From positions 186,001 through 250,000 of IMG/VR virus record IMGVR_UViG_3300036770_004143: a stretch of DNA of 64,000 bases; one strand, given 5' to 3'. Shown here in pieces: positions 6,098-54,639 of the stretch. The notes below the pieces were generated by a model. The model was not told the origin of the DNA. It saw only the letters and a program-made list of their open reading frames with translations, and searched no databases. Each line of letters starts with the position of its first letter. Position 1 is the stretch's first letter. A program made the position numbers and the translations under genes.

Positions 6098-6098
6098 A

Positions 6099-20325: not shown

Positions 20326-20339
20326 AGTTGTTTTGTTTG

Positions 20340-20413
20340 TAATCCTGGTTGGATTTGAACCAACGATCCCCTAATTAAAAGTTAGGTGCTTTAAACCACT
20401 AAGCTACAGGATT
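20340..20413 (-). tRNA. tRNA-Lys(TTT)
   Basis: Cloverleaf; anticodon arm cctaa-CTTTTAA-ttagg. Confidence 0.9.
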
Positions 20414-20423
20414 ATTAAAAATT

Positions 20424-20496
20424 GTTACCACAACTGGATTTGAACCAATACTAACAGAATCAAAATCTGTGGTGCTACCTTTACACCATGTGGCAA
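20424..20496 (-). tRNA. tRNA-Gln(TTG)
   Basis: Anticodon arm acaga-TTTTGAT-tctgt; T loop TTCAAAT. Confidence 0.85.
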
Positions 20497-20504
20497 TTTA
20501 AAAA

Positions 20505-20700
20505 GAAATAAGTTTTTTGTCCCCGTTGAACATCATGATCCAGTTTTACCTGGATGGTTGGATTTTCCTAGTTGCTACCAAATTGGCCACAGTAGCCCAT
20601 AGTTATATCAAACTCTCGGTCACTTGCTAATATATCGCGAATCAAGCAAGTTAAACCTTACATATACCCTGGGGTTTCACCAGAGTCATCACTTATTTTC
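20505..20700 (-). ncRNA. Unassigned structured RNA (~195 nt)
   Basis: Terminal stem (gaaaataagt/acttatttc) plus four internal hairpins; no ORF. Confidence 0.55.
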
Positions 20701-20708
20701 ATCTTTTG

Positions 20709-20778
20709 AGGTTAGTGTTAGAATTGTACTAACTCTATGAGATTTGCAGTCTCACTGGTCTCCATGACCAAACTAACC
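20709..20778 (-). tRNA. tRNA-Cys(GCA), atypical T loop
   Basis: gtgaga-CTGCAAA-tctcat; T loop reads TACAATT. Confidence 0.75.
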
Positions 20779-20785
20779 ATAATTG

Positions 20786-20862
20786 GGTGTTTGATGGGAT
20801 TCGAACCCACATTTAATATGAGTCACAATCATACCCCAAAGGCCAATACGGGTTCCAAACAC
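20786..20862 (-). tRNA. tRNA-His(GTG)
   Basis: tatga-TTGTGAC-tcata; T loop TTCGAAT. Confidence 0.85.
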
Positions 20863-20864
20863 AG

Positions 20865-20935
20865 TGGTCTTATAGGGATTTGAACCCCAACTTCAGCATC
20901 CGTAGTGCTGTGTGCTGTCATTACACAATAAGACC
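20865..20935 (-). tRNA. tRNA-Arg(ACG)
   Basis: cagca-CTACGGA-tgctg. Confidence 0.9.
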
Positions 20936-20943
20936 AAAATCAA

Positions 20944-21015
20944 TCAAGCATTCTACTCCCAGCCCCGAGGAATTGTATCTAACTTAGCCCATCTCACCGC
21001 TGTGTGGGTACTTGA
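20944..21015. ncRNA. Small GC-rich structured element
   Basis: Closing stem tcaagca/tacttga with internal ccca/tggg pairing. Confidence 0.4.
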
Positions 21016-21029
21016 CCTTTTGTATTTTC

Positions 21030-21818
21030 CTAATTCAATTCAGGTATTTGTTCTTTTAAATACTTATAAATCTTCCAAGTTTGAATTTTAGGTGAAGAAA
21101 TAAATGGATATAAATTCTTCCAGTCTGTCTTTTTCATCACATCTAAAACTCTTTCTTGGTATGTTTTATTGTTTATAATCACATAATTTTCCTGACAAAA
21201 TGTTCCTATTTCCTTCACTTCTTTTCCAATACTTGCCCCATATGTATTCATAGCAAAATCAAAAGTTTCAGGTTTTTTATATGTTCCACCTCTTCTATAT
21301 TCACCAACAAATACATCATTTAACTTGTAATCTATTGCTTTTTTGTTAATCCCATTTTTAGGCCTTTGGTACACATTAAAACAACATAATAATTCAATAC
21401 CACTATATTTAATTAAAGGCAACACTTCTGAATGGATTAAATCAAACTCATACATTTGTTGATTATTGTTATATTGACTAACAGGTAATATAAAAGCAAT
21501 ATAATCACCCATTTTAGCTGCTTGTTTATAAAAAGCAACACTCAAAGTATTCCTTGTCCCAAATGGGGGGTTTCCAATAAACAACCTACCTTTCTTATAA
21601 GGTAGTTCAAGTTTTAGAAAATCTTGTTTAATAATACTTTTATGTTCAGGCTCTAAATCATAAGCAATGCAATTGGGTATCTGTAAACTAAAACTACCTC
21701 CACCAGCAGCTGGTTCAATTGTTTCAGTTATTTCAAATCCTAGATTATTTACAACATCAATACAATATTTTGCAAGTTCTTTTGGTGTATAATATTTGTC
21801 TAAATTTATTTTTGACAT
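21030..21818 (-). CDS. DNA amino-methyltransferase (N6A/N4C, NPPF type)
   Basis: YYTP, IEPAAGGGSF, DF and IGNPPFG motifs. Confidence 0.85.
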   Translation of the reverse strand: MSKINLDKYYTPKELAKYCIDVVNNLGFEITETIEPAAGGGSFSLQIPNCIAYDLEPEHKSIIKQDFLKLELPYKKGRLFIGNPPFGTRNTLSVAFYKQAAKMGDYIAFILPVSQYNNNQQMYEFDLIHSEVLPLIKYSGIELLCCFNVYQRPKNGINKKAIDYKLNDVFVGEYRRGGTYKKPETFDFAMNTYGASIGKEVKEIGTFCQENYVIINNKTYQERVLDVMKKTDWKNLYPFISSPKIQTWKIYKYLKEQIPELN

Positions 21819-21849
21819 GATTGTTTTTTTTTAAAAGTAAAACAGAAAG

Positions 21850-21975
21850 TGTGGGATTCAAACACCGCACATGATACCGACCATGATACCAACCATGATA
21901 CTTTTATCTTTTGCGTAGGTGGAAGATTCAAACCATACATGATACCATACATGATACCAATTACACCACACCTAC
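21850..21975 (-). repeat. Two degenerate tRNA-like units with CATGATAC repeats
   Basis: Five CATGATAC copies at 21870, 21882, 21894, 21938 and 21950; gtaggtg/cacctac stem; TTTGAAT T-like loops. Confidence 0.55.
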
Positions 21976-21982
21976 TTTAAAA

Positions 21983-22234
21983 TCACTTGGATTTTTTGCC
22001 ATCCAATTCTGTAAGTTTGTTTTCAAACTCTACAAGCCTTCTGTCAAATCTATTCTCAACCTCATCTATGATATTATAAATATCCCTGTGGAAGTTTGAA
22101 TTAGCATGTTGTTTGTCTTTTAATTCATCTGTGATTGCGTTCACTTTGGCTTTAAGATAAATAACACCAGTAAATGACCAAAATAATGTTACGATAATTG
22201 TGGTGACAATTGCACCTAATGCAAATTCTATCAT
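21983..22234 (-). CDS. Membrane-anchored coiled-coil protein
   Basis: Hydrophobic N-terminus. Confidence 0.6.
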   Translation of the reverse strand: MIEFALGAIVTTIIVTLFWSFTGVIYLKAKVNAITDELKDKQHANSNFHRDIYNIIDEVENRFDRRLVEFENKLTELDGKKSK

Positions 22235-22575
22235 AGTTCTGTTTTTAATTTACTTAAATCTTCATTTAATCTTCTAATAAATGATTCCTCACCATCATCA
22301 CCAGATACCAACCAATCAATCCTTTGTGCATAAATATATGCAATCTGTAAATGAGTTATTCCTTTTTTAAATTCTTCAATAACTTCATCTGGATATTTAT
22401 GCCAGAACATATCTTCTGGATACTTATTGAAATAATCATCATCAAAAGCACCCCAAGCACCATCTATAATTTCTTGTTCTGTTTTAACTCTACCATTATT
22501 TGCAATCAAATCTTCAATAGAATCAATCATATTCTTTATCTTAGATTGGTCATAGTCAAAAAATCCTCCAGACAT
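22231..22575 (-). CDS. Conserved phage protein (MSGG.FDY...RIDWLVSGDDGEE)
   Basis: Motif recognition; start moved to MSGGFF. Confidence 0.65.
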   Translation of the reverse strand: MSGGFFDYDQSKIKNMIDSIEDLIANNGRVKTEQEIIDGAWGAFDDDYFNKYPEDMFWHKYPDEVIEEFKKGITHLQIAYIYAQRIDWLVSGDDGEESFIRRLNEDLSKLKTEL

Positions 22576-22745
22576 ATTTGTTGCTTTTTTTTGTTTAGTA
22601 ATTAGGATAGTATTTGAATTAATGCCCCTAGTAATGCAATCACACCAAATATATAAACAATCATTGGGTCTAATGGATAACACCCTTCAACCATTACTTG
22701 ATGTAGTTCTTTTAAAAATCTTTTCATTTTTTTGATTTTAGTTAG

Positions 22746-22828
22746 TGAGGGTAATAGGATTTGAACCTATTCAGACATAATCATTTGATTTACAGTCAAA
22801 CCCAGCTCTCCCACTCTGGCGTACCCCC
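22746..22828 (-). tRNA. tRNA-Tyr(GTA)
   Basis: tttga-CTGTAAA-tcaaa; long variable arm. Confidence 0.9.
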
Positions 22829-22845
22829 TAGTTTAAATTTGTTTG

Positions 22846-22917
22846 AGCCAATAGAGGGATTTGAACCCCCAACCCCATCTTTACAAAAGACGTGTTCTAC
22901 CGTTGAACTATATTGGC
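22846..22917 (-). tRNA. tRNA-Thr(TGT)
   Basis: cgtct-TTTGTAA-agatg. Confidence 0.88.
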
Positions 22918-22921
22918 AATA

Positions 22922-23323
22922 TTACAATTTTATCTCGAACCTTTTCCGCATTTTATCAATTGCCTCGTCTGGCACATTGTGAACATTCTTCCCCCCATGC
23001 CTATTCTCAACAACTATGGAATAAACTCTATACCCATATTTTTCTGCTAACTCATAGTAGGGCTTCATTTCCCACTCTTGGGTGAATGTGTTAGATACAA
23101 CAATTCTATCAACATTATACCCAGAATTATCCACCTCCATCCACTTTCTAACTTCTTCTCTGCACCAAGCATGAGCCTCTTTCAATTTTGATGCATCAAA
23201 TTTATATTCACCATACTGCATAAAGTATCTATCTGCTTCAACCAATGATCCACCCAACTGGGCTGCCAATGTTGATTTACCTGAACCAGGTAGTCCTCTT
23301 AATAAGAAAAGTTCCTTTGCCAT
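22922..23323 (-). CDS. P-loop kinase (AAA_33 / polynucleotide-kinase-like)
   Basis: LLRGLPGSGKST, EADRYF, VVSNTFT and HNVP motifs. Confidence 0.85.
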   Translation of the reverse strand: MAKELFLLRGLPGSGKSTLAAQLGGSLVEADRYFMQYGEYKFDASKLKEAHAWCREEVRKWMEVDNSGYNVDRIVVSNTFTQEWEMKPYYELAEKYGYRVYSIVVENRHGGKNVHNVPDEAIDKMRKRFEIKL

Positions 23324-23337
23324 AATCTTCTTTTTAT

Positions 23338-23835
23338 TTAATAAACATTAAAAGGTAAGTTTGTGTTCAACACAGTATGACCTTCTTTTTTAACTTTTGA
23401 ACAAAAAGTTCTCAACATTTTAATAGCCTCTTCATTCTTTATTAAATCAACCATTGAAAGTCTCTTGCCACTTCCAGCATTAACAAAAGTCTGTATGGTA
23501 TATTTTGTTGTATCTCCATAAAGAATTCCCTTCTTTTCATCTTTCTTTATTGCTTGATTTGTTAACCAATTTTGGAACAAATCATCAACAACCCACTCCA
23601 ATTTATTACCATAACCTTCTATGCCTAGGCTATCACAATATTCTTCCATCTTTTTGAAAGCCTCTTTGGTTTTGGCTTCACCATCCCAAAGGTTGCAATC
23701 AGTACTCCCACCAGTTCCCCTATTTATACAATATCCAATTTTTTTGTTATCAAAAAAAATATCTGCTTGGAATGCATAAGTTTCTTCTGAAAACTTTGCA
23801 GAATATTTCACATTTTTTAACTTAATTCTTTCCAT
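23338..23835 (-). CDS. Hypothetical protein (SEET.AF.A..N.GTGG family)
   Basis: ORF; TATCTTTG motif upstream. Confidence 0.6.
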   Translation of the reverse strand: MERIKLKNVKYSAKFSEETYAFQADIFFDNKKIGYCINRGTGGSTDCNLWDGEAKTKEAFKKMEEYCDSLGIEGYGNKLEWVVDDLFQNWLTNQAIKKDEKKGILYGDTTKYTIQTFVNAGSGKRLSMVDLIKNEEAIKMLRTFCSKVKKEGHTVLNTNLPFNVY

Positions 23836-23918
23836 TGTTCTTTTGGTTTGATTACCTCACAAAGATAAACTAAAGTTTGCAGAAGTCCAAATGTAATGAT
23901 TATTTTTTTTTCAATTAT

Positions 23919-24518
23919 TTAATCTAAACTATTAGGAAAATACAACAAAGTTGGATTACGTTTCTGAATGTCAACCTGGGGATATGATTTCCTAAACATA
24001 TCAACATCAAATCTTTTTGTGATTAAATGATAACCACTTTTAGTTGGGATTACTGCTTCAACCTTATTACCCCCTGGTCTAGTTTCATCAAGTATAGCAA
24101 TAGTCTTTGCTAATTCTTTTTCATCTTTATCATCAATATCAACAATCCATCTATTCTCCATTCTTTTTACCTTCCCAACAACACTCTCAAATAAATTTTT
24201 CTGATTATGTTGTCCATTTTTGATTCTTTCAGCCAAAAGCATCATCATATCCAAGGCCACATCTTTATGGTTCTGTTTTTGAATGTGAATGTAGGTTCTT
24301 GCTTTGAAGAGTTCTGATAACTGCATAATCTCTTCATATTTGCTATCAAGATAATCCAGGCTATCAATACAATACGTTTTAATGGTTCTGGATGACTGGT
24401 GATTATCTCTCTCCTCTTTTGGTTGATCCTTCTTTCTTTTAAGAATATATAACATATAGAAATCACCCTCTTCTGTGAAGTTTAGTAATGGTTTGATTAT
24501 GTCCAGGTTGTTTATCAT
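23919..24518 (-). CDS. Possible AEP/PrimPol-superfamily protein
   Basis: WIVDID (DxD) and TKSGYHL (sGxH) motifs; start moved to MINNLD. Confidence 0.45.
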   Translation of the reverse strand: MINNLDIIKPLLNFTEEGDFYMLYILKRKKDQPKEERDNHQSSRTIKTYCIDSLDYLDSKYEEIMQLSELFKARTYIHIQKQNHKDVALDMMMLLAERIKNGQHNQKNLFESVVGKVKRMENRWIVDIDDKDEKELAKTIAILDETRPGGNKVEAVIPTKSGYHLITKRFDVDMFRKSYPQVDIQKRNPTLLYFPNSLD

Positions 24519-24576
24519 GTTTTTGTTTTTTTGATAAAGCAAAGATAAACCTAAAAACTGGTAAATGCAAATCTAT

Positions 24577-25059
24577 TTAAAACTTTTTCATTTTGTAATG
24601 AATGGCAATGAATTTCTCATGATTTATATCATTTTCATCACATATTTTAATGATTTCTCTTAATTTACCACTAACTTCTGAAACAACTTCACCTAATTTG
24701 TTTACCTCATCAATTAAGTTATCAATCTCTTCTTCTATGCTGGTATAACCCCCCTCTTCCCAATCAACATCATACAATGTTTCATCATCATCTAATGTGA
24801 TATATAGAAAGGCACTAAATTTACCACTATTATGTTCAATTTGAATATAAGATGCCACATCCATTGTATATAACTCAAAAAGAACCACATTTGGTTGTTC
24901 ATTTTCAATAGAAAACTGGATGCCCAGATTTTTTAGGTGTTCACTTACATTTTCAATAAACTCTGCACTATTTGCCATAACTTTACTGTCCTCAACCAAA
25001 TTTGTTGGTCTGGATTGAATAAGTTGTTTTAACCTATCAATATTTTCTTGTAATTTCAT
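24577..25059 (-). CDS. Hypothetical acidic protein with KLQE leader
   Basis: ORF; TATTTAT upstream. Confidence 0.65.
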   Translation of the reverse strand: MKLQENIDRLKQLIQSRPTNLVEDSKVMANSAEFIENVSEHLKNLGIQFSIENEQPNVVLFELYTMDVASYIQIEHNSGKFSAFLYITLDDDETLYDVDWEEGGYTSIEEEIDNLIDEVNKLGEVVSEVSGKLREIIKICDENDINHEKFIAIHYKMKKF

Positions 25060-25086
25060 ATAGTTCTTTTACAATAAATATATCCA

Positions 25087-25323
25087 TTAACTAATTAAAT
25101 CAAATGATACATTATTACTATCCATCAATTCATGTAAGGTTGTCCTAACTTGAACCAAAGCATCATGTACCTCCTGGCTCATTGTGTCTGGTGCATACTT
25201 TGTCTCTGACCTCAAGTGTTGATCCAGTTCATATAAAGTCATCATTATGTCCCTACCTTTTGCAGCCAACATAAATTGCTCCATATCCTCTGGTAGATTA
25301 AATTCCAATATTGCTTTTGCCAT
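25087..25323 (-). CDS. Conserved phage protein (KAILEFNLPED)
   Basis: Motif recognition. Confidence 0.65.
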   Translation of the reverse strand: MAKAILEFNLPEDMEQFMLAAKGRDIMMTLYELDQHLRSETKYAPDTMSQEVHDALVQVRTTLHELMDSNNVSFDLIS

Positions 25324-25328
25324 CTTAT

Positions 25329-25511
25329 TTAGTTTTTAATGAATTTATAAAGTTCAAGTAATAATAACCCAGCTTCAGCCTTGGTTAGAAACATCTTACC
25401 CCTATCATGATTGATATAGGTATGAACAACAAGGATTTCCTCTGAACCATTTGATTTATCAATGGTCACTACTGGTGCTTCAACATAAATTTCATTGGGT
25501 TCTGTAATCAT
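25329..25511 (-). CDS. Hypothetical protein
   Basis: ORF; TATCTTTG upstream. Confidence 0.55.
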   Translation of the reverse strand: MITEPNEIYVEAPVVTIDKSNGSEEILVVHTYINHDRGKMFLTKAEAGLLLLELYKFIKN

Positions 25512-25721
25512 TTTATTCTTGTTTAGACCTCAAAGATAGTAAAATACTTTTAATAATCCCAGGTAGATTTATCTACTTTTTTACCATTCATAATGCAATC
25601 AAACACATAATCCCATTTTTGATTTTTAGTGATATAATCCACTAAAATTTGGCTAAACCCCAAGGAAGTGGATCCGTTTTCTGTTTCTAATTTAATGTCT
25701 AATATTTTCATAATTTTTGTT

Positions 25722-26045
25722 TTAATATAAGTCTTCTGAAAACAATCTGTTGCCCCTAATTTGGGATAAATCAATTACCTGGTTTTCTTGTAATGCAATT
25801 TGAAGCCCCTCTTCACGGCTAACAAACCTATTTTTTGATGTCAAAAACCCTTGTTCATTTTCACCACTTTCAGCATCTCTTAACCCTGTAATAGCATATT
25901 TTGTGTAAATACATTGCCCATGCCTATGGCCACTAAAAACAATACCCCTATCAAGGTTTGCTGGAAGATAAACCTCAATTGGTAATTCCTTTTTAAGTTC
26001 AATGTTTTTATACCAAATAGCAGCACATATTATTTTCTCATTCAT
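25722..26045 (-). CDS. Conserved phage protein (CAAIW..GHRH..QGFLTS.NRFV)
   Basis: Motif recognition. Confidence 0.65.
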   Translation of the reverse strand: MNEKIICAAIWYKNIELKKELPIEVYLPANLDRGIVFSGHRHGQCIYTKYAITGLRDAESGENEQGFLTSKNRFVSREEGLQIALQENQVIDLSQIRGNRLFSEDLY

Positions 26046-26589
26046 GTTTTTGTTTATATTCTTTAATAAAAGTTTCTAAATCTTGTGGTATATCACCGTA
26101 ATTATGTAATTCATATGCAAAGTTTTCAACCCATTCTTCTTCATCACCATATTCTAAATATTCATAACCAAATAAATCATATTCTAATTCACATATTGCA
26201 TGTCCAAGTTCATGAAATATTGTTGTTTCAACTGTCACCCATAATGGTACATTATATTCTTTAGAACCTTCTAAAATATCCTTTTCTGATAAAATAACTA
26301 TTGGTATTGATGAACTTGTACCACTTCTAAATCTACCTAAAGCACCTTCTCCAATATTATTGACAAATATTATTCTAATATCCTTGAATAAATCTATTTT
26401 ATTTTTAAATATTTCAATTGCTTCCCTAGAAAACTTAACTATATCAGAATGTACTTTGGTTATATCTTTAACCCCATAGTCATTAATAATATGGTTATAG
26501 TCATCACTTTCTTTATTTAAAAGAAATTCAATATCCTCATTCAAAAAATCTTGAATTGTGGTTTTAATAATTCTTCTCAAATCTTTCAT
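26038..26589 (-). CDS. Putative zinc metalloprotease-like protein with FLNE leader
   Basis: HELGH (HExxH) followed by EEEWVE. Confidence 0.55.
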   Translation of the reverse strand: MKDLRRIIKTTIQDFLNEDIEFLLNKESDDYNHIINDYGVKDITKVHSDIVKFSREAIEIFKNKIDLFKDIRIIFVNNIGEGALGRFRSGTSSSIPIVILSEKDILEGSKEYNVPLWVTVETTIFHELGHAICELEYDLFGYEYLEYGDEEEWVENFAYELHNYGDIPQDLETFIKEYKQKHE

Positions 26590-26629
26590 ATTTTATTTTA
26601 TATATAAATATTAAGTTTTAAAAGTTTTG

Positions 26630-26715
26630 TGGTCAGGATAGGATTCGAACCTATATTGTTGAATTACCCAGCTTCAACTGCTTAAGTATAGCGTTTACCA
26701 TTCCGCCACCTGACT
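26630..26715 (-). ncRNA. tRNA-like RNA E1 (no canonical anticodon arm)
   Basis: agtcagg/cctgacc acceptor, Leu-type D arm, TTCGAAT T arm. Confidence 0.7.
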
Positions 26716-47338: not shown

Positions 47339-47809
47339 TTAATTATCATCATCTTCTTCATAATCATCTTCATCTTCATAATCATAATCAATGTAATATT
47401 CAGAAATTATATCACCTTTTATAAAACCAGGTTCAATTGATTTTCTTAAATGATCATCATTTTTATAGTAATAAGGTAGTTCAGATTCAGTTACATCTAA
47501 ATGCCCCCCAACTTTCAATCCTTTTGGTAATGAAGTTATGCTTGTTCTTACTAAAAATAAACTATCACCAATTTCCAATCCTTCTGGTAGTGATTTTATT
47601 TTTGAACGAGATAAATCTAACCAACCACTAATTTTCAAGCCTTTTGGTAATGAGGTAATTTTTCTATCCTGTAAATCCAAATCACCTTTAATATTTAATT
47701 CTTCTTCTGTTAATGGCTCACCATTTTCCCATTTCCACAAGAATGGAGTATTATGTTCTCCCTTCTTTTCAAGGAACTCAAATATTCTTTTTAATGCTTC
47801 TTTTTCCAT
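47339..47809 (-). CDS. LRR-like repeat protein with acidic tail
   Basis: Same family; ends DYDYEDEDDYEEDDDN. Confidence 0.85.
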   Translation of the reverse strand: MEKEALKRIFEFLEKKGEHNTPFLWKWENGEPLTEEELNIKGDLDLQDRKITSLPKGLKISGWLDLSRSKIKSLPEGLEIGDSLFLVRTSITSLPKGLKVGGHLDVTESELPYYYKNDDHLRKSIEPGFIKGDIISEYYIDYDYEDEDDYEEDDDN

Positions 47810-48711
47810 TATTTTCTATTTGTTTTCTCACCCTCTATTCTTACAGATATTTTTGGTTTATACCCTTTTGGCAATCTATTATCTATTCCAACAAATTCCC
47901 CCATTTCATTATCCATTCTAATAGTAATTTCTCTCTTATCCAAATTCATCATTATCTGCCCCACAGTCTGCATATTATACATATTCTTCATTCTATAAGG
48001 ATTCAAGAACTTATTTTTCTTATATTGTTCTTTCATCTTATCAATAACATCTTGATCCTTTTGAGCATCTTGCAAATGCTTTTTGGCCAACTCCAATCTT
48101 GAATGGGATGACTTCTTCTTTATGCCATAAATATAACCTGTTTTTTTGTGTACTATGCCATGATTGGTTCTTACCTCAACCTTATCATCACCCATCTTTG
48201 TTATGACCGGAGTGTCCTTACTTGTGAGTTCAATAATATATATATTCTTTGGGCTTCCAACAATTGTCTGCCCCTTAATTCCAACATTCTTTGGATCATC
48301 TGCGTCATAAGATATGATTGATTTAATCACATCTTTTAAATTCCTAAAACTTAATGCTCTACGTATTTTCTTACCATCATTGGAGTTCTTAACTTTCTTG
48401 GACTTGAATACTTTATTACTTTCCTTCTCATCTTGCCTAACCAATAGACTTGAATTAACTATTCCAATACCGTATTCATTCATTCCCTCGGACCAGTCTG
48501 TTTCTGTATCTCTCCAATACATAACCTCAACATCATCCACAATCTCATGGACAATTTCCATCTTTGCCAAATAACCCCTATCCCTGTTTTTGGCTATAAC
48601 ATTCCCATCATCTAATCTAACAGCAGCAATTGTGCATTCTTGGATTAGCCTTTGTTCATCTAAAATATTTACTTGACTTTCAGTAAGCAAAATGAATTTA
48701 TTATCTTTCAT
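47809..48711 (-). CDS. Ntn-hydrolase-like protein with N-terminal leader
   Basis: CTIAAV...AKNRDR, EGMNEYG.GIVNSSL and RTNHG motifs. Confidence 0.6.
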   Translation of the reverse strand: MKDNKFILLTESQVNILDEQRLIQECTIAAVRLDDGNVIAKNRDRGYLAKMEIVHEIVDDVEVMYWRDTETDWSEGMNEYGIGIVNSSLLVRQDEKESNKVFKSKKVKNSNDGKKIRRALSFRNLKDVIKSIISYDADDPKNVGIKGQTIVGSPKNIYIIELTSKDTPVITKMGDDKVEVRTNHGIVHKKTGYIYGIKKKSSHSRLELAKKHLQDAQKDQDVIDKMKEQYKKNKFLNPYRMKNMYNMQTVGQIMMNLDKREITIRMDNEMGEFVGIDNRLPKGYKPKISVRIEGEKTNRK

Positions 48712-48730
48712 TTTTTTTACTATAAATATA

Positions 48731-49147
48731 TCAAGACAATGATTTAATCAAACTCATCATCTTATCATCTATATATAACCCACTTAATTCTTCATAGGTA
48801 AAATAGCCACATTCTGTATGCTCATCACCATCCATAGCATTCTCCAAATCTGGAACTAATTTCTTATCTGGGCTGTCTAATAAGAACACATTGAACCTAC
48901 CATTTATCTTGCTACCATCTCTTGAATATCTATCAATGGATGCAATAGGTGTTAGTTTCCTATTTGTTATATGAATATTAGTTTCCTCATAGAACTCCCT
49001 TTTAGCACCTTCATGTGTTGTTTCAAATGTTTCCAATTTCCCAGCAGGAACTGACCACATTCCAGGCAAACTATTGCTCTTTGGACTTCTCTTGCAAAGT
49101 AGAAACTCCTTATTGTGTCTTACTAATACACCAACATACTCTCTCAT
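48731..49147 (-). CDS. NUDIX hydrolase
   Basis: PAGKLETFETTHEGAKREFYEET Nudix box. Confidence 0.9.
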   Translation of the reverse strand: MREYVGVLVRHNKEFLLCKRSPKSNSLPGMWSVPAGKLETFETTHEGAKREFYEETNIHITNRKLTPIASIDRYSRDGSKINGRFNVFLLDSPDKKLVPDLENAMDGDEHTECGYFTYEELSGLYIDDKMMSLIKSLS

Positions 49148-49158
49148 ATTCTTTTTAT

Positions 49159-49860
49159 TTATTGTTTGATTAAATGATAAGCATTTTTATTTCCAGTGTC
49201 AATGAATACCAATTCAGCATCATCATATTTCTTAATTACTTTTTCATCCAAATGAGTATGACCAACCACTTGGTTAAATCCTGGAATATAATCATTTGTC
49301 AATTCCTTCATACCTGCCCAAAATACACCAGAGAAAGGATCAATACCACCCCTCTCATCACCAATGTAAAAAAGGGTCTTGCAACTAATTTCAAACAAGA
49401 AGTTTAACTTGTCTGCAATGTCATTATGCTCTTTTACATCACCCCAACCCAAATCCAATGCTGTTAAATAATCATTCTCTGTTGATTGAACCAACTTGTT
49501 TGTAATCCCAGCATGGGAAACAATGGTATTACCATATAGAAATGTTGCTTGGAACAAATCTTTGTGCTTCTTGAATAAGTTATTTACATCAAACATAATG
49601 CTATAATCAAATCCTGTTCCCCTATAATTACTATTCAAGTAATAATAATGAATATCATGATTACCCAAAAGCAACTTAACCTTATCTGGATAAGTTTGTT
49701 TAAGTTTGATGATTTTCCTAAAATTATCCAAAATCTTTTTTGACCCAATGGAATAAGAATCAAAGTAATCACCTACAAAGACAATATAGTCCTCATCCAT
49801 ATGCTCATTAACAATGGATTTCCAGAAGTCTTGACCATGAATATCACCAATTACTAACAT
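49159..49860 (-). CDS. Calcineurin-like metallophosphoesterase
   Basis: GDIHG, VGDYFD, GNHD, SHAG and VGHT motifs. Confidence 0.9.
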   Translation of the reverse strand: MLVIGDIHGQDFWKSIVNEHMDEDYIVFVGDYFDSYSIGSKKILDNFRKIIKLKQTYPDKVKLLLGNHDIHYYYLNSNYRGTGFDYSIMFDVNNLFKKHKDLFQATFLYGNTIVSHAGITNKLVQSTENDYLTALDLGWGDVKEHNDIADKLNFLFEISCKTLFYIGDERGGIDPFSGVFWAGMKELTNDYIPGFNQVVGHTHLDEKVIKKYDDAELVFIDTGNKNAYHLIKQ

Positions 49861-49931
49861 TTTTTTGTGTTTTGTTTTGCAAAAATAGAATTAAATTTGA
49901 TTAAAACCTATTTATTATATAAATAATTATC

Positions 49932-50279
49932 ATGAAATTGAAAATAAATGATTTAACCTTTGAAGCAAAATTGGCAATATCTCGTGAAGAGAAAGAAAAA
50001 GGAATGATGAATAAGGAATTTGATGAAACCTTTAATTCTATGTTATTCCTTATGGATGAACCCAGATCCTGTTTCTGGATGAAGAATTGTATCATACCAT
50101 TGGATATAATAATGATTGATGATAATGTAATCACAAAGATACATCACAATTGCCCCCCATGTACAACTGAAAGATGTAAAAGATATTGTGGTGATGGGAA
50201 TATGGTGTTAGAGGTGATAGGGGGAACGTGTAAAAAAAATAACATCAAGGAGGGTGATGTCCTTGATGTTAATAGTTAA
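49932..50279 (+). CDS. DUF192-family protein
   Basis: GMM..MLF..FWMKN..IPLDII..VLEV.GG. Confidence 0.8.
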   Translation: MKLKINDLTFEAKLAISREEKEKGMMNKEFDETFNSMLFLMDEPRSCFWMKNCIIPLDIIMIDDNVITKIHHNCPPCTTERCKRYCGDGNMVLEVIGGTCKKNNIKEGDVLDVNS

Positions 50280-51757
50280 TATTTGCTAACTTCTGTTTCT
50301 AACTTATCTTTAATTTTACTTGCAATAGTTTTCATTAAACTCAAGTATTCTGTCTCTCCGCCCTCTTTTTTAGAATCAGATTTGACATATTTTGGTTCTG
50401 ATGATGCTGTTCTTGGTTCTGTTGATTTTGGTTTTGGTGTTCTTGGACCAGGAGGCCTTTTACCCCTACCTATGAAGTTCAATCCTGAAATGTTTGTAAT
50501 ACTTGGATGACCACCACTATTTGCTTGGATTATATCCCAAGCATTTAATGCAACACAATCTAATTTTTGTTTCTCATCTTCTGTTAATTCACTAAATAAC
50601 TTATCCATAATTGATTTCAATTCAGCATTTGTTTTTGGCGCACCAGGTTTTGTATAATACTTATCCCCATATGTTGCATGAAAATCATTGTATGTAAATC
50701 CAACACTATCTTCCTTTGCTTTTGATTCATTAACCCACTTCATTGTTGATAATAAGATTAACTTATCTTCCAACATTGGTTTGAATTGTGCCATAACCTT
50801 TTGTGCTAATTCCCCTAAATGAAGTGCCTTGTATTTTGGATTTTCTTTAAATGGATTTTTTGAAACCTGGATTAAACCCAATGGCCAATAAATAATCAAA
50901 AAGTTTGCATCTGGTTGATTCTTAAATGCAACATATCTATCATATGATCCTGTACCCTTTAAAGTACCCATACCATATTGATATATAATACCATCCTCAT
51001 ATTTAACACTTGGACTGTCTTTCATTGATTCAATATATTTCTCTGCATTCATCTGCAAATCCTCTGGTAATTCATCTGTATTCTCTTTCATCCATTTCTT
51101 AATATTATTCAATATAGATAATATAGATGGTGTTGAATTCATTACAAGATATTCAAGAAATCCTTTCTTATTCTTAAATGCCAATAATAATTTATTTGCA
51201 ACAAGACCAAGTAATAATTTATTCTCCCTCATTGATTTTGACTTATCATACTTATATAAGTAATTGATAACATTGTCTGGGGTTAAACCTTGTCTAACAA
51301 AATCAGCCGAATCCACTGTATTGATTATCAAAATATCTGTATCACTAAACAAATCACTTTTTGAAATAACTTGTGAAATGGTTTCAGCATTTGACCTTGC
51401 TTTCTTAAATTGTCCTGATGTTTTTTTGGTATCAACACCAATCTGGCTATCATGGTGATCTGTATGTATTTTGAACATAGGTTTTCCATGTGCAAAATCC
51501 ACTAGAACAGGCATAGTATCCCCTAGGGCATCATTCTTCTTTACAGCAAACTCCATATCCCCGTATTGGATAACATGTGCATCAATAACTTCAATGCCAT
51601 TATCTTCCAAGTATTTTTTCATAGCTAAAGCCGATGTAACACCATCAAGCCCTCAGAGGTCCTGGTGAAAGTAGATCTCCGCTTTATTATAACGGTTTGC
51701 AAGAGCATCAATATCTCTAATTCCACTTTCTACCAGGACCTGATTGTTTTTTTTCAT
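50276..51757 (-). CDS. DHH-family phosphoesterase-like protein interrupted by an in-frame TGA (51653-51655) in a 9-nt insert; candidate recoded gene
   Basis: ATG 51757 is in frame with the track ORF: MKKNNQVLVESGIRDIDALANRYNKAEIYFHQD-L*G-LDGVTSALAMKKYLE; LVDF and DHH motifs follow. Confidence 0.75.
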
Positions 51758-51792
51758 AGTCGTTTATTTTTTTTATTACAATAAATATATAA

Positions 51793-52689
51793 CTACTTTA
51801 AATAAGTAGTTAAGTTATATAACTCATTTTTAGTTATCGAACATTTACTTTGTTTTGAACAATTTTCACTTCCCAAAATTGGTTCTAAATTCTCTTTTGC
51901 TGACAAAATTTCAGGAGGAATATTATTTTTAAAACCTTCAAATATGCTATACTTATGATCAATATGATATAAGTATTTACCAATTTTATAATTGTTAGGG
52001 TTAATTATGTCTTTATATCTTCTATATGTGATTTTTGTTAATGAACGCACTTTTTTAGCATAATTCATATATTCTAATAAATCCTCATTTTTAAAACCAC
52101 ATTTTATTGAATCATAATAACAATAACTACAAATAAATTTTTTATGTTTAGCAGCAAAATTAACATATCTTTTATCAGAAATATGTCCATTTTTACACTC
52201 AACAACTAATTTACTATTTTTACCATCTAAATCTAATAATGATAGCAATTTAAAACCATTTTTATTTACTATTTTTTTTAAAAAAACTTCATTTATTATA
52301 CTTTGATTCTTTTTTATTTTAACATCATCAATTAAAGAGGGATTTTTAGCACCTTTCCATTTTTCAGAATAGATTAATTTTAATTCTTTAACTCTTTCTT
52401 CACTATGAAAATCACTCCATTTTCTATTATCACCAAATCTACCATTACCATCACCACTACATTGACAAGGTCTGCATATTTGAATATCAAAATTCAATTT
52501 ATCCTTAATTAAATGACACGCATTTATTGAGTGCAATTTATTAGGTGTTTTACATGTTAAAGAATCACAAGCCCAAATAACTTTATAACCAGTAGTTCCT
52601 TTTTTATTATCCAAATATTTCCCATCAATTTTGGTATAATAATTAGGTTTAGATTTATAATAAAATGGCTTCCAAATTGATTTAATCAA
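51793..52689 (-). CDS. Putative homing endonuclease (Cys-rich, C-terminal HNH-like)
   Basis: CxxC pairs; HIDHKYS...NLEPI..ENCSK. Confidence 0.6.
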   Translation of the reverse strand: MIKSIWKPFYYKSKPNYYTKIDGKYLDNKKGTTGYKVIWACDSLTCKTPNKLHSINACHLIKDKLNFDIQICRPCQCSGDGNGRFGDNRKWSDFHSEERVKELKLIYSEKWKGAKNPSLIDDVKIKKNQSIINEVFLKKIVNKNGFKLLSLLDLDGKNSKLVVECKNGHISDKRYVNFAAKHKKFICSYCYYDSIKCGFKNEDLLEYMNYAKKVRSLTKITYRRYKDIINPNNYKIGKYLYHIDHKYSIFEGFKNNIPPEILSAKENLEPILGSENCSKQSKCSITKNELYNLTTYLK

Positions 52690-52690
52690 C

Positions 52691-53059
52691 TTAATTAAGT
52701 GTTAATAAATATTTCATTTTATTCACTTCTGCCAAAATTTCATCTCTGATATTTAGCAAATCAGTGTCTTCTCCTTCTGTTAATTTTTCTGATAAACTCA
52801 TCAAAAACTCTGTAAAATCATCCAGATACTCCTGCATTGAAAATCCCTCAATATCTTTAAACTCCATTGAGAAATCACCCCCAAACTCAGGACGACCATG
52901 CTTACCCATACAAACTTCAACATACTTATCAATCAAATCATCCAGATTTTCATAAAAAGCACCATAAGCCTGGTGCTTTGCATATGATTTTGTTTGCCAA
53001 TGCAAGAACCTAAACTGAATTTGAGTGCTAACTAGTTCTAATATAATCTCTTCATTCAT
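52691..53059 (-). CDS. Ferritin/Dps-like protein (DUF5856 type)
   Basis: HWQT.SYAKH.A..FYE.L..LID..VE; LLNIRDEI..KY.LTL. Confidence 0.75.
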   Translation of the reverse strand: MNEEIILELVSTQIQFRFLHWQTKSYAKHQAYGAFYENLDDLIDKYVEVCMGKHGRPEFGGDFSMEFKDIEGFSMQEYLDDFTEFLMSLSEKLTEGEDTDLLNIRDEILAEVNKMKYLLTLN

Positions 53060-53060
53060 A

Positions 53061-53663
53061 TTATAATAATTTTATTAATCTTCTTTCTCCACCTCCACGG
53101 GCTTCTCTATACATATCATTAAATGTTTTTTCATCTATTTCATATAAAAAACTTTCATCCATACTATATAGAAACTTTTTATCTCTATGACTACCCTTTG
53201 CTAATTTAGAGAAAAACTCTTTTGTTAAATCAGTATCTATTTCCATATTTTTATCCCAGCCTTTTTTTGTGAAACTATTTATAACCTTACCCATACCTGA
53301 TGCATCATTAGTTCCAATTTCAACAAACTCATTACTATCTTTATATATAACTGAATACTGATCATAATACTCCCCCAAGAAAAGTAAGCGTTCTTTACTT
53401 ATGTTTGGTATAAAAAGTGTTTTTTCATTTATCCAATCACCTTCTTCTTTAAAACCACCTTCTAATTCAATATAACCTAATTTAAGATTATTTCTAACAA
53501 AAGATTTTAATTCTTTATACCTTTCTAAATTTTCAACCCTAGATAAGTATTTTCTAAATGGAGAAATCACGCCAAAAGATGCTGAATCATCCTGAACATA
53601 TTTCCAAACTCTTGATAAACTACTTTCTTGTAGTATAACATTTTTTACTTTCCTTTTTTCCAT
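53061..53663 (-). CDS. Conserved phage protein (ESSLSR family)
   Basis: ESSLSRVW, ISPFR, N..R..LK and Y.Q.SVI motifs. Confidence 0.6.
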   Translation of the reverse strand: MEKRKVKNVILQESSLSRVWKYVQDDSASFGVISPFRKYLSRVENLERYKELKSFVRNNLKLGYIELEGGFKEEGDWINEKTLFIPNISKERLLFLGEYYDQYSVIYKDSNEFVEIGTNDASGMGKVINSFTKKGWDKNMEIDTDLTKEFFSKLAKGSHRDKKFLYSMDESFLYEIDEKTFNDMYREARGGGERRLIKLL

Positions 53664-53680
53664 ATAACTATGTTTTAATA

Positions 53681-53923
53681 TTAAATACTTGTTCCTGACA
53701 ATTTATTTATCTTAAACTCAAGATATTCTATTGCTTTTTTTAAATCTTCAATTTCCTTGTCTGGATTTTTCCTGCCGGATCTTGCAACATATTTAACAAC
53801 ATTGAATAAATAGGCATCTTTATCCAAACCCCAAGCCTCACATACTTTATAAACCTCATATGTGTTATCTTCCCCAAATTTATAATGGTCTGGGTGTGAA
53901 ACCATTTCTTTGTTTGTTATCAT
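53681..53923 (-). CDS. DUF3310 / T7 gp1.7-like nucleotide kinase domain protein
   Basis: VSHPDHY..KYVAR.GRK..EDLKKA.EYL. Confidence 0.8.
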   Translation of the reverse strand: MITNKEMVSHPDHYKFGEDNTYEVYKVCEAWGLDKDAYLFNVVKYVARSGRKNPDKEIEDLKKAIEYLEFKINKLSGTSI

Positions 53924-54639
53924 AATTTATCAATATTTTTAAAGATTATTTTACGTTTTGCAATTGGTAATATGGTTTCTCTTACTGGAAAGTCTTGTGT
54001 AGATGTAATTTCATAAACCTGTTTATTTGTATCATATCCTTTTTCTTTAAGTTTATCAAAAACCTTAATCATAGATATCTTATCATAATCACCACAATAA
54101 ATTTCATTGAATGAACTGCTTGTGCTATACTTTCCATCATTGAGAAGAACTTCAAACGAATAAATATATAATAATTTTTTTGTTTTGTCAAAATAATAGA
54201 AATAACCTGTTGAACTTATTGCTGATTTATTTTTTTTTAATTTAACATCAATATTCTCAAAAGCTAAAGTCCAAATTGATTTGGCAAAATTAAATAAATC
54301 AAGAAATTTTGGGTATGTAAAATTAATTGTTCTACTAACTTCACTCTTATCCTTAACCATTAGTTTAGGAACTTCATCATATCTAAAATCCCCAAGTTCA
54401 ATCTCATCATCATATTCATTTAACTGCCTGGTTAATGAAACAATTTTATTATCCTTACCTATGGAAGCAATATTGATTAAGTTTAATGTTATGTCATGTA
54501 AATCAGGATATATCTTTAATTCATTTAATCTACCCTCTGAACTCTTTATATAGTTTAGAGCAATGTATTTATTGTATTCAAAATCAATAGGACGTCTAAA
54601 CACCCACTCAGAATTAAGTTTTTCATTCATCATCATCAT
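53920..54639 (-). CDS. Hypothetical protein
   Basis: W....IDFEYNKY..L.Y motif. Confidence 0.6.
   Translation of the reverse strand: MMMMNEKLNSEWVFRRPIDFEYNKYIALNYIKSSEGRLNELKIYPDLHDITLNLINIASIGKDNKIVSLTRQLNEYDDEIELGDFRYDEVPKLMVKDKSEVSRTINFTYPKFLDLFNFAKSIWTLAFENIDVKLKKNKSAISSTGYFYYFDKTKKLLYIYSFEVLLNDGKYSTSSSFNEIYCGDYDKISMIKVFDKLKEKGYDTNKQVYEITSTQDFPVRETILPIAKRKIIFKNIDKL

Follow-up and report, generated by a model that had tools for sequence, protein, structure and literature searches.

The bypass in T4 gene 60 and the MobA element are reportedly described by Huang (1988) and Bonocora (2011). For decades, the T4 gene 60 lineage was essentially the sole bacterial or phage example of programmed bypassing, and every newly found case is a homolog of the same MobA element and sits in one and the same topoisomerase gene (bioRxiv 10.1101/2022.08.31.505936). 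Hopping between matched codons that flank a stop is otherwise represented by synthetic stop-hops in E. coli (Weiss, Dunn, Atkins and Gesteland 1987; O'Connor 1989; PMC5009743; bioRxiv 10.1101/2024.12.09.627546), in which 9 nt give one amino acid; no natural stop-hop was known as of the 2016 recoding review (PMC5009743). The byps of Magnusiomyces capitatus mitochondria are short mobile coding inserts that are harmless via matched-codon hopping (Lang 2014; Nosek 2015; cited in PMC5009743). The +1 frameshift site of prfB (RF2) reads CUU UGA C, and is stimulated by an upstream SD; its context is given in PMC13245932. The free-standing homing endonucleases of the seg and mob groups of T-even phages show localized marker exclusion.

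The locus studied here is located in IMGVR_UViG_3300036770_004143 (IMG/VR); positions 186,001 to 250,000 of this record, a stretch of 64,000 nt, were analysed and are called the window. On the minus strand, one reading frame starts at ATG 51757-51755 and reads YFHQD (CAC CAG GAC for the last three residues), CTC, TGA, GGG and CTT; it then reads GAT GGT and runs on into a 448-aa ORF (50276-51622). The features of the locus are as follows.

51647-52685, minus strand: whole mobile cassette, delimited by blastn and alignment against the nearest insert-free genome (L095)
51793-52689, minus strand: HNH-like free-standing homing-endonuclease gene, 298 aa, putative; supported by motif conservation, homologs and a model
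51656-51757, minus strand: replacement N-terminal piece, 34 codons from ATG to CTC ('HomR'-like), homologous to the displaced segment but diverged
51722-51741, minus strand: helix 5' arm, codons 6-12 (QVLVESG)
51657-51675, minus strand: helix 3' arm, codons I-Y-F-H-Q-D plus CU of the take-off codon
51656-51658, minus strand: proposed take-off codon CTC (Leu); CTN Leu in 29/29 unique insert alleles
51653-51655, minus strand: in-frame stop TGA; TGA, TAA or TAG at the same position in relatives
51650-51652, minus strand: spacer codon GGG; AGG in one relative (L092), missing from the 6-nt form
51647-51649, minus strand: proposed landing codon CTT, the 3' end of the cassette; identity to L095 resumes right after it
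50276-51646, minus strand: DHH/DHHA1 phosphoesterase body, from D33 onwards, with its TAA stop at 50278-50276

The initial annotation, made without any comparison to other genomes, had read this locus as a stop-containing mini-insert in DHH motif I, whose expression requires a hop, within an HNH cassette like that of gene 60 and mobA. The core of this reading, in which the bypass and the protection from cleavage are inferred, withstood every comparative test that we ran. In our opinion, the locus is best explained by an endonuclease cassette in which peptidyl-tRNA-Leu makes a programmed hop of 6-9 nt over the stop; our confidence in this explanation is moderate.

The host gene is a DHH/DHHA1 phosphoesterase, as shown by its fold matches and by its DxD, D, DHH, D and GGGH-type DHHA1 motifs. 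The model of P0001, an insert-free homolog of 96% identity, matches RecJ, DhhP, pApA phosphodiesterase and pAp phosphatase with a probability of 0.99-1.0. Pfam DHH matches the host gene under the gathering cut-off (E = 5e-4 to 2e-5), and a PDB profile search with the DHH family gave no match. D31, D33, D82, D95-H96-H97, D147 and G410-G411-H412 are invariant in the DHH family; the DHH and GGH motifs are present in the window body. The insert is located between the two Asp codons of the catalytic motif I (DxD). Different from MobA, which resides in the gene of the topoisomerase II large subunit, the insertion here is at the 5' end of its host gene, and there is no split into two ORFs with CTE/NTE extensions.

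The 9 nt are a genuine insert, foreign to the DHH family. All full-length homologs examined (120 proteins and 75 viral loci) carry an uninterrupted EIYFHQDLDGV; H29, Q30, D31, L32, D33 and G34 are invariant, and no homolog examined has extra residues between D31 and D33. A native extension of three residues, which would have refuted the initial annotation, was not found among these homologs, and its claim that removal of the 9 nt restores H-Q-D-L-D-G held, as homologs without insert read YFHQDLDG. Assembly error was considered and rejected; at the insert site, three independent IMG/VR contigs (L001-L003), each from a different metagenome, match the window exactly, and related inserts are present in dozens of other assemblies.

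From more than 50 contigs, we obtained 31 unique insert-bearing alleles. Seven of them have the 9-nt form found in the window, which is the rarer variant, and the rest have the common 6-nt form. The latter is always Leu-stop-Leu (CTT TGA CTT, CTT TGA CTG, CTG TGA CTT, CTT TAG CTT or CTT TAA CTT), and its stop is always followed by C. Inserts of 3 nt (stop-only) or 12 nt were not found in IMG/VR. Three further candidates (L093, L094 and L098) were chance pattern matches in GC-rich bacterial DNA and were discarded. The landing codon is CTT in 22, CTG in 6 and GTT in 3 of the 31 alleles, and Leu codons flank the stop on both sides in 28 of them. The pair of take-off and landing codons is Leu/Leu in these 28 alleles, including the window (CTC/CTT), and its decoding by one and the same tRNA is inferred. 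GTT occupies the landing position in three of the seven 9-nt lineages (L089, L090 and L091), whose bodies are still intact and well conserved; therefore, strict matching fails there. Pairs of CTT and CTG would need either one tRNA that reads both codons or wobble tolerance in the P-site. At the take-off position, 39 of the 47 insert-free alleles have TTR; CTC, the take-off codon of the window, is the rarest Leu codon there (1.3 per 1000).

Compared to L095, the cassette brings 1,039 nt in place of 92 nt of the uninterrupted gene, which correspond to codons 2-32. In the cassette, the HNH-like ORF is followed by a short intergenic leader, then by the N-terminal replacement piece and finally by the stop-containing insert. 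Its left break is directly after the shared TTG start (52689-52687) and its right break at the landing codon; the flanks are 99.2% identical to L095 upstream (DUF5856) and 93-97% downstream. Like the T4 gene 60/MobA system (bioRxiv 10.1101/2022.08.31.505936), the cassette is a mobile element with an endonuclease gene, HNH-type there and HNH-like here. Like MobA, it carries a stop-containing non-coding insert, with the 3' end of the element at the landing codon, and it brings along a diverged, element-encoded replacement of the adjacent coding region. The identity of the replaced region is 67-81% in MobA and 71% here (51/72 to L095), compared to 93-99% in the flanks of the cassette. The replacement piece keeps the family-conserved G, I/M, Y and IYFHQDL.

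Insert-bearing alleles are scattered across the tree of the bodies, and an identical cassette was found on bodies that are 52% different in amino acids; MobA, too, has inserted repeatedly into a single site of a conserved gene. The insert belongs to a widespread mobile cassette family, whose nuclease activity is inferred. Among the 9-nt alleles, the replacement piece varies at no more than 3% of positions, although up to 32% of the amino acids differ between their bodies. The near-identical N-terminal island of these alleles may come from recent gene conversion instead of constraint.

The HNH-like ORF starts at the TTG that serves as the DHH start codon in insert-free genomes. A comparison of 36 homologs shows conservation of H242, D244, H245, N267 and N276 (H-x-D-H...N...N) and of two Cys-rich fingers; in the AF2 model, residues 241-279 form a beta-beta-alpha arrangement (strands 241-245 and 268-272, helix 273-279). 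The C-terminal 100 residues are 40% identical (E = 4e-12) to annotated free-standing homing endonucleases of T4-like phages, which sit between the tail sheath and tail tube genes. A Pfam search with the ORF gave no match, Foldseek with the whole multi-domain model (pTM 0.41) found no significant match in the PDB, and in PHROGs only two families were hit, both of unknown function. The claim that the upstream gene is of HNH type held in part: the assignment as HNH homing endonuclease rests on the motif and the C-terminal homology, it has no profile or fold support, and cleavage is inferred only. Homology of the ORF to MobA is not established; mobA of the T4 laboratory-strain reference is a 114-nt remnant.

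HNH homologs of 50-73% identity are located at the same position in other cassettes. The gene was found in 12 of the 28 unique cassettes and in none of the 47 insert-free alleles (Fisher p = 1e-6), and it never lies beside close insert-free alleles; a 43%-identical homolog adjoins one uninterrupted but distant DHH gene (L103). The strict co-occurrence of insert and endonuclease that had been predicted failed, as the other 16 unique cassettes have no HNH gene. In MobA, too, the endonuclease is often lost and the bypass insert kept. Presence/absence polymorphism was observed between near-identical genomes (the window versus L095, L086, L091 and L092; L004 versus L089). The cassette resembles the seg and mob genes in its location between conserved genes, in its presence/absence polymorphism in close relatives and in adjacent co-conversion that gives mosaics. 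Different from it, those genes normally leave no stop-containing insert in the target gene; cleavage by the ORF of the cassette is inferred.

An in-frame stop in catalytic motif I could mean that the gene is dead. In this explanation, the cassette is a selfish insertion, and the body is either a recent pseudogene or yields a truncated protein from the internal ATG 51622. In its favour, one lineage (the L112 type) carries a second nonsense mutation, and some bodies may have gained the insert recently by cassette mobility. However, the bodies are under strong purifying selection. Between insert-bearing sister lineages their dN/dS is 0.05-0.2, even at saturated dS, and decay of the downstream ORF (dN/dS near 1), which would have refuted the initial annotation, was not found. 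The close 9-nt pairs of the window body with other insert-bearing alleles gave values of 0.07-0.13; the 6-nt pairs gave 0.06 at dS < 0.3 and 0.19 at saturation, with an omega of 0.046 at dS 1.2 for one of them (L105-L131). As far as sequenced, 30 of the 31 unique allele bodies have no further stop. L090 was considered as a decaying allele and rejected; its high dN was traced to a recombinant C-terminal half.

Inactivation also fails to account for protein-level conservation that begins right after the stop, upstream of any ATG. The nine codons between the landing codon and the first Met are conserved as protein with many synonymous changes; the D, G, V and A after the landing codon are conserved in 31/31 alleles, each with 2-4 synonymous codons, and the first Met after the insert is missing in three alleles. 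Conserved codons with synonymous change lie before the first Met; therefore, frame 0 is read straight after the stop and not from a site of reinitiation. We regard frame-0 translation past the stop as shown, with the qualification that it is deduced from comparison of sequences and that there are no protein, RNA or read-level data. Conservation of the N-terminal piece and of the helix described below is likewise unexpected of a dead 5' fragment, and inactivation is very unlikely.

Translation past the stop could also be readthrough by a near-cognate or suppressor tRNA, provided that the enzyme works with two extra residues in motif I (6-nt form) or three (L-X-G in the window). As the insert keeps the frame, readthrough would restore the downstream frame as well and would account for both the selection and the post-stop conservation. 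A stop followed by C is a weak termination context in E. coli, which favours readthrough. The products of hop and readthrough differ by just two residues and are confusable (Atkins et al., PMC5009743). Against readthrough, three different stop codons are used across lineages and would need different suppression mechanisms. Conversion of the stop to a sense codon, which should bring no cost, or even a benefit, to an enzyme that tolerates the extra residues, was not seen; in a scan without restriction on the codon between the two Leu codons, a sense codon occupied the stop position in 0 of 40 viral contigs. The absence of extra residues between D31 and D33 in the homologs examined and the invariance of H29 to G34 also argue against it.

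The stops of the window give no support to suppression either. Of its 79 long ORFs, 58 end with TAA, 14 with TGA and 7 with TAG, which confirms the claim that TGA is a normal stop there, and there is no suppressor tRNA among its 8 tRNAs. Genome-wide TGA recoding, Sec/Pyl insertion and a suppressor tRNA were rejected, since all three stops end window ORFs and the stop at the site varies by lineage. Readthrough is unlikely, but it cannot be excluded, and the choice of the Leu hop over it is an inference; no product has been observed.

The region upstream of the insert is predicted to form a long mRNA helix. In the window it has 19 bp with one bulge (MFE -41.6 kcal/mol, z = -4.0), and nothing comparable is predicted for the nearest insert-free allele (z = -0.1). 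An independent prediction with RNAalifold gives 17 bp family-wide, with 93% of cells paired; this family-wide helix stops at the final base of GAC, directly before the take-off codon. A GC-rich helix of 17-19 bp was found in all insert-bearing lineages but one and in no insert-free allele examined. The mean MFE of the 110 nt upstream is -35.5 for 27 insert alleles and -16.1 for 44 insert-free alleles (p = 4e-11); in MobA, upstream mRNA structure is also stronger in insert-bearing than in parental alleles. The sole lineage without the outer helix is the L112 type (MFE -11), whose second nonsense mutation is a TCA to TAA change at an invariant Ser. The association of the helix with the insert is shown, and its function is inferred. 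A search of Rfam found no known RNA family in the region.

In the 3' arm, the insert alleles have fixed their synonymous codons on rare GC-ending forms, ATC TAC TTT CAY CAG GAC CTN; the corresponding codons of the insert-free alleles are ATA/ATT TAT TTT CAC CAA GAT TTR. We used this codon table of insert and insert-free alleles instead of a pS/pN split, as pS/pN of arms versus loop was uninformative: synonymous sites are too few, and the covarying CAC/CAT and CTN positions dominate them. T4 gene 60 bypassing also involves a nascent-peptide signal in the exit tunnel; here, the insert alleles have conserved N-terminal peptides, but conservation of these residues extends to the insert-free family. 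Covariation was found at one pair (G-C 18, A-U 6, G-U 1). Support from covariation is thin, with a single compensatory pair, most pairs invariant and arms that also encode conserved residues.

The position of the helix bears on two other explanations. In the first, peptidyl-tRNA-Asp hops from GAC to the next GAY, a distance of 12 nt for the 6-nt form and of 15 nt for the window, and the product reads HQD-G. No allele lacks the GAC/GAY match, which extends to the three GTT variants; GAC is also the exact end point of the conserved helix, and a rare CUN codon and the stop stand ahead of it; and Asp take-off/landing pairs with 'hungry' A-site codons are documented in MobA-type cassettes. However, this product would be without the invariant L32 and D33, hence without DxD, although the rest of the active site is still strongly selected, and Leu on both sides of the stop in 28/31 alleles, with its synonymous CTT/CTG variation, would be unexplained. 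The Asp hop is not excluded, but we consider it very unlikely. In the second, the 6 or 9 nt are removed at the level of nucleic acid, either by helix-guided excision from the mRNA with ligation or by heterogeneity of the insert in the DNA population. A long helix with its end beside the insert might in principle serve as a signal for processing. To our knowledge, excision of 6-9 nt from bacterial mRNA has not been described; Rfam gives no match here, the Leu-stop-Leu pattern would be meaningless under such a model, and the insert is fixed in many independent assemblies. Removal of this kind is highly unlikely.

In our reading, an HNH-type homing-endonuclease cassette has invaded the 5' end of a phage DHH/DHHA1 gene and has taken over the resident start codon. 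For the preferred Leu hop, we propose the following mechanism. Once the CUN Leu codon is decoded and the stop has entered the A site, the ribosome would pause; peptidyl-tRNA-Leu would then unpair and re-pair on the second codon, 6 nt (common form) or 9 nt (window) downstream, and decoding would restart at GAY to give the HQDLDG product. The helix may act as stimulator, re-zipping behind the ribosome and pulling the mRNA through the exit channel, as proposed for the 5'/extended stem-loops of T4 gene 60. If the analogy with MobA holds, the cassette allele would probably owe immunity to the endonuclease to its insert and to the recoded codons beside it; the endonuclease would cut insert-free alleles in co-infections, and repair would spread the cassette. 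The role of the helix, cleavage and immunity are all inferred, and nuclease activity has not been observed.

In its details, the proposed hop differs from that of MobA. Compared to the 20-50-nt gap of MobA, the hop here is of 6 or 9 nt, with only 3 or 6 nt between the codons, and no take-off stem-loop fits. In T4 gene 60/MobA, an SD-like triplet is located 5-7 nt before the landing codon; in the 9-nt form GAGGG directly adjoins this codon, and an SD-like element is absent from the 6-nt form. The proposed hopping tRNA is Leu, whereas it is Gly or Asp in MobA. With the synthetic stop-hops, the locus shares matched codons that flank a stop; the 6-nt CUU UGA CUU is exactly of this type, and the window would be a +9 variant with one extra codon, of which the product has not been observed. 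Different from the synthetic constructs, which are artificial, low-level and without stimulators, the inserts here are natural, conserved across deep divergence, helix-linked and part of a mobile element. Stop-hops without stimulators are described as 'low-level' (bioRxiv 10.1101/2024.12.09.627546) and are inefficient; therefore, high-level expression is not guaranteed at this locus.

Like prfB, the site would have peptidyl-tRNA-Leu on CUU and a poorly recognised UGA-C in the A site. At prfB, re-pairing is +1, on an overlapping codon, and aided by an SD, whereas here the frame is kept, the proposed re-pairing is +6/+9 and the helix is the proposed stimulator. The byps are also short mobile coding inserts that matched-codon hopping makes harmless; however, they are 27-55 nt in length and mitochondrial, an unassigned codon takes the place of the stop in the A site, and no endonuclease is associated with them.

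A bolder reading is that this is the first natural maintained stop-hop, driven by the helix, independent of T4 gene 60, and serving as the immunity module of a second endonuclease-cassette family that is widespread in uncultured large phages; we consider this extended claim slightly more likely than not. If true, the locus would represent an independent second origin of the endonuclease-plus-bypass partnership and would test it as a general evolutionary solution. It would also be a minimal system (6-9 nt, one helix, ~130 nt in total) for testing the model in which pairing of the exiting mRNA is the driver, without a 50-nt gap. The ~30 natural variants are a ready mutational series, with three stops, CUU/CUC/CUG take-off, GUU landing, presence or absence of the spacer and one helix-less lineage. 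For annotation, apparently truncated genes such as the 448-aa ORF without motif I may be intact recoded genes.

The remaining claims of the initial annotation concern the local sequence around the insert. A TATTTAT promoter motif had been proposed, but its 6 matches, compared to 2.4 expected, are not significant; a hairpin after the stop is not conserved in relatives, and both claims are unsupported. The proposed 18-bp stem with one bulge at the take-off codon held. The stretch had also been called unusually GC-rich; its GC content is only modestly raised, 0.40-0.42 compared to 0.30, and similar peaks occur elsewhere.

The gene interrupted in the window was delineated by frame reading on the minus strand:

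51757–50276, minus strand: interrupted DHH gene, start ATG 51757, end TAA 50278–50276

From this ATG, 34 codons are read, the last of which are TAC TTT CAC CAG GAC CTC. They are followed by TGA at 51655–51653 and by GGG CTT GAT GGT, after which the same frame remains open to the TAA. Because the in-frame TGA splits the gene, the ORF listing picks it up only from the internal ATG 51622, as an ORF of 448 aa. Homology searches were run with the upstream and downstream pieces separately, and the downstream one yielded about 3,900 homologs. EIYFHQDLDGV is uninterrupted in all full-length homologs examined (465–490 aa), and 75 of 80 related viral loci also show the uninterrupted reading. Across 32 aligned, diverse homologs, no variation is seen at H29, Q30, D31, L32, D33 or G34. 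The AlphaFold model of P0001, an uninterrupted homolog of 96% identity, resembles RecJ, DhhP, the Thermotoga pApA phosphodiesterase and pAp phosphatase (probability 0.99–1.0); the Pfam DHH score is slightly below the gathering threshold. Based on the homologs, the invariant residues and the fold matches, the gene encodes a DHH/DHHA1 phosphoesterase, with 9 nt lying between the codons of the two aspartates of motif I.

The initial annotation had proposed a stop-containing 9-nt insert in DHH motif I, and this held. None of the full-length homologs examined natively carries three extra residues, a possibility it had raised. It had also considered an assembly error, which is ruled out, since the window allele was found identical at the site in three IMG/VR contigs from different metagenomes. 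Its claim that TGA serves as a normal stop elsewhere was correct: ordinary ORFs in the window end in TAA (58), TGA (14) or TAG (7).

The DHH gene sits in a conserved block (window 47809–54639) with a convergent DUF192 gene and with metallophosphatase, NUDIX hydrolase, DUF5856 and DUF3310 genes; the block may be related to nucleotide metabolism or signalling. Among deposited phage genomes, the gene matches only two uncultured phages of 630–640 kb. Much longer DHH bodies (the part downstream of the insert; 493–713 aa) occur at L113, L121/L144, L111/L141 and L115 and in proteins P0038, P0039, P0041 and P0072. Acetyltransferase domains are present in P0072 and PF25218 in P0038; the DHH family therefore includes C-terminal extensions or fusions.

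In total, 31 unique insert-bearing sequences were collected, in two forms. The 9-nt form is present in seven lineages, and the insert sequence itself is variable. Distant homologs of the HNH-like ORF upstream of the gene precede DHH genes broken at the identical site by a 6-nt Leu-stop-Leu insert, and a pattern scan located this form in 40 IMG/VR contigs.

Inserts at motif I. Counts for the 6-nt form cover the 40 contigs found by the scan and four loci, L099–L102.
9-nt insert TGA GGG CTT: window, L086
9-nt insert TAA GGG CTT: L004
9-nt insert TAA AGG CTT: L092
9-nt insert TAA GGG GTT: L089, L090
9-nt insert TGA GGG GTT: L091
Take-off codon plus 6-nt insert, CTT TGA CTT: 19 loci
Take-off codon plus 6-nt insert, CTT TGA CTG: 9 loci
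Take-off codon plus 6-nt insert, CTT TAG CTT: 8 loci
Take-off codon plus 6-nt insert, CTG TGA CTT: 7 loci
Take-off codon plus 6-nt insert, CTT TAA CTT: 1 locus

When the scan was relaxed to accept any codon at the position flanked by the Leu codons, it recovered exactly these 40 IMG/VR contigs; therefore, no allele has a sense codon at the stop position. Further pattern scans of IMG/VR found neither stop-only inserts nor 12-nt inserts.

Decay of the downstream ORF (dN/dS near 1), a possibility raised in the initial annotation, was checked and not supported: dN/dS is 0.07–0.13 between close insert-bearing pairs, equal to that of uninterrupted alleles. Close pairs of 6-nt alleles have a dN/dS of 0.06, and where dS is saturated the value is 0.19; the 6-nt sister lineages L105/L131 have an omega of 0.046 at dS 1.2. 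Along the nine codons from the landing codon, which follows the stop or its spacer, to the first in-frame Met, the amino acids are kept with two to four synonymous codons each, with D, G, V and A unchanged in 31 of 31 alleles. Reinitiation at the internal ATG is ruled out as the source of this conservation, because the codons before the Met are conserved and the Met itself is missing in three of the 31 alleles. The sequence comparisons show that the gene is not dead despite its interruption and that ribosomes must pass the stop while staying in frame 0; no product has been observed. The exception is the L112 lineage, in which an invariant Ser codon, TCA, is changed to TAA. In this 6-nt type (L112, L120, L132, L143 and also L142), the nonsense codon falls at the Ser of the RSN motif and the remaining frame is open.

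Upstream of the stop, the mRNA can fold into a long helix:

51741–51722 pairing with 51675–51657, minus strand: mRNA helix of 19 bp with one bulge (MFE −41.6, z = −4.0)

Folding of the nearest uninterrupted allele gave no comparable helix (z = −0.1). The mean fold energy of the 110 nt 5′ of the take-off codon, the Leu codon before the stop, is −35.5 kcal/mol in 27 insert alleles versus −16.1 in 44 insert-free alleles (p = 4e-11). RNAalifold independently predicted a 17-bp consensus helix that ends, on its 3′ side, with the final base of GAC, immediately 5′ of the take-off codon. In the helix alignment, paired bases fill 93% of cells. Covariation is limited to one pair (G-C 18, A-U 6, G-U 1), and the others show one-sided variation (wobble or mismatch) or are invariant; thus, covariation support for the helix is modest. 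Insert-free alleles use ATA/ATT TAT TTT CAC CAA GAT TTR at the site, whereas ATC TAC TTT CAY CAG GAC CTN is fixed among insert alleles, with the take-off codon always of the CTN family. This codon choice, judged from sequence alone, agrees well with a helix that accompanies the insert. Among the insert alleles folded, only L112 falls in the insert-free energy range; it alone among the lineages has lost the helix's outer half (MFE −11 versus about −35). The L112 type has probably died recently, and it serves as a natural negative control.

We propose that peptidyl-tRNA-Leu would hop from CUN across the stop onto the landing codon. Decoding would then restart at GAY to give HQDLDG, and the junction peptide would be ...IYFHQDLDGVTSALAMK. 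The helix may be the forward driver, a function that is inferred and has not been observed. At take-off, the GC-rich part of its 3′ arm would be within the ribosome, just behind the P site, and re-zipping of this arm would advance the mRNA a few nucleotides. Alternatively, stop-codon readthrough would place extra residues in motif I (...HQDL-X-G-LDG...). This is unlikely, as all three stop codons occupy the site, a sense codon never does, the flanking Leu codons vary only synonymously in 28 of 31 alleles and the DxD spacing is invariant across the DHH family. For these reasons we lean towards the Leu hop over readthrough, although the hop itself is inferred and has not been observed. An Asp-to-Asp hop from GAC to GAY (...HQDGV...) is very unlikely, since its product would be missing L32 and D33. 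Three points count against the simple Leu-hop picture: the three 9-nt lineages with a GTT landing codon look healthy, the GAC/GAY pair that an Asp hop would use is matched in every allele, and unstimulated stop-hops are inefficient (bioRxiv 10.1101/2024.12.09.627546).

Of the 8 phage-encoded tRNAs, one is a tRNA-Leu (anticodon AAG; 26629–26715, minus strand) inside a tRNA cluster at 20339–26715. Judged by its anticodon, this tRNA would decode CUU, plus CUC given deamination of A34 to inosine; with inosine at A34 it would match both the landing (CUU) and take-off (CUC) codons of the proposed hop. CTC is the rarest Leu codon of the window.

The HNH-like ORF (51793–52689, minus strand, 298 aa) has an invariant H-x-D-H...N...N motif and two Cys-rich fingers, and its model shows a strand-strand-helix (ββα) arrangement. 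Its C-terminal 100 aa share 40% identity (E = 4e-12) with free-standing genes of T4-like phages that are annotated as homing endonucleases and flanked by the tail sheath and tail tube genes. No supporting Pfam or PDB match was found for the ORF. Resting on the motif and fingers, the modelled arrangement and the C-terminal homology, its assignment as a homing endonuclease is likely; no nuclease activity has been observed.

Comparison with L095, the nearest insert-free genome (99.2% identical upstream and 93–97% downstream), defined the cassette:

52685–51647, minus strand: cassette of 1,039 nt, in place of 92 nt of the uninterrupted gene in L095

The left break is directly after the TTG start codon, which is taken over by the HNH-like ORF, and the right break is at the landing codon. 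The N-terminal coding region of the element is just 71% identical to the L095 region it displaces. The HNH-like ORF occurs in 12 of 28 unique cassettes versus 0 of 47 unique insert-free alleles, and each cassette subtype is known with and without it. The insert state is scattered across the body tree, identical cassettes sit on bodies 52% different in amino acids, the closest relative of the window body is an uninterrupted allele, and L090 is a recombinant relative to L004, with the C-terminal half of its body from another lineage. These results show horizontal spread of the cassette with recombination. The L091 and L092 bodies are nearly identical (dS 0.08), but the two diverge in the insert (3 of 12 positions) and over the next 30 nt; in these comparisons (L090 versus L004, L091 versus L092), recombination breakpoints lie inside and just past the cassette.

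In the MobA element, the endonuclease is followed by the element-encoded 'HomR' (67–81% identity) and a bypass cassette that extends as far as the landing codon; the endonuclease is often lost (Manning and Atkins, bioRxiv 10.1101/2022.08.31.505936). Likewise, the DHH cassette runs from the endonuclease through a diverged replacement region (71%) to an insert ending at the landing codon. Different from gene 60/MobA, it sits in another host gene, its hop would be 6–9 nt, the gap has no take-off stem-loop and the hopping tRNA would be Leu; it is thus not a member of that family. On balance we favor a locus that works like the gene 60/MobA system yet stands outside it, with the hop and the nuclease target inferred. 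The 6-nt form is the 'stop-hop' configuration of synthetic constructs. According to a 2016 review (PMC5009743), natural examples of it were not known, and no later report of one was found in the literature searched.

Taken together, the interpretation of the initial annotation is supported and extended. Its mRNA stem ending at the take-off codon held, and its HNH-type endonuclease is backed by the motif, the model and the C-terminal homology but by no Pfam or PDB match. Two claims held in part: the Leu codons are matched in the window (CTC/CTT), but the landing codon is GTT in L089, L090 and L091, and the insert co-occurs with the endonuclease in only some cassettes.

At L103/L104 (1457–3897), a 43%-identical HNH-like homolog lies divergently beside a distant uninterrupted DHH gene (motif THDDMDGV), and the HNH-like family may be tied to DHH genes, though not always with the insert. 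The DUF5856 gene, the upstream neighbour of the cassette, is a single 122-aa ORF in the window (52691–53059) and is called as two ORFs of 75 and 44 aa at L089 (3451–3819), possibly another interruption or a sequencing error. L099 has a further inserted ORF of 502 aa (4911–6419, plus strand), located after the interrupted DHH gene and before DUF192, with Cys-rich fingers near its N-terminus and ...GFEFNGVRWH... in its middle part. Its sequence suggests, tentatively, another free-standing endonuclease, which makes the locus look like a hotspot of selfish genes.
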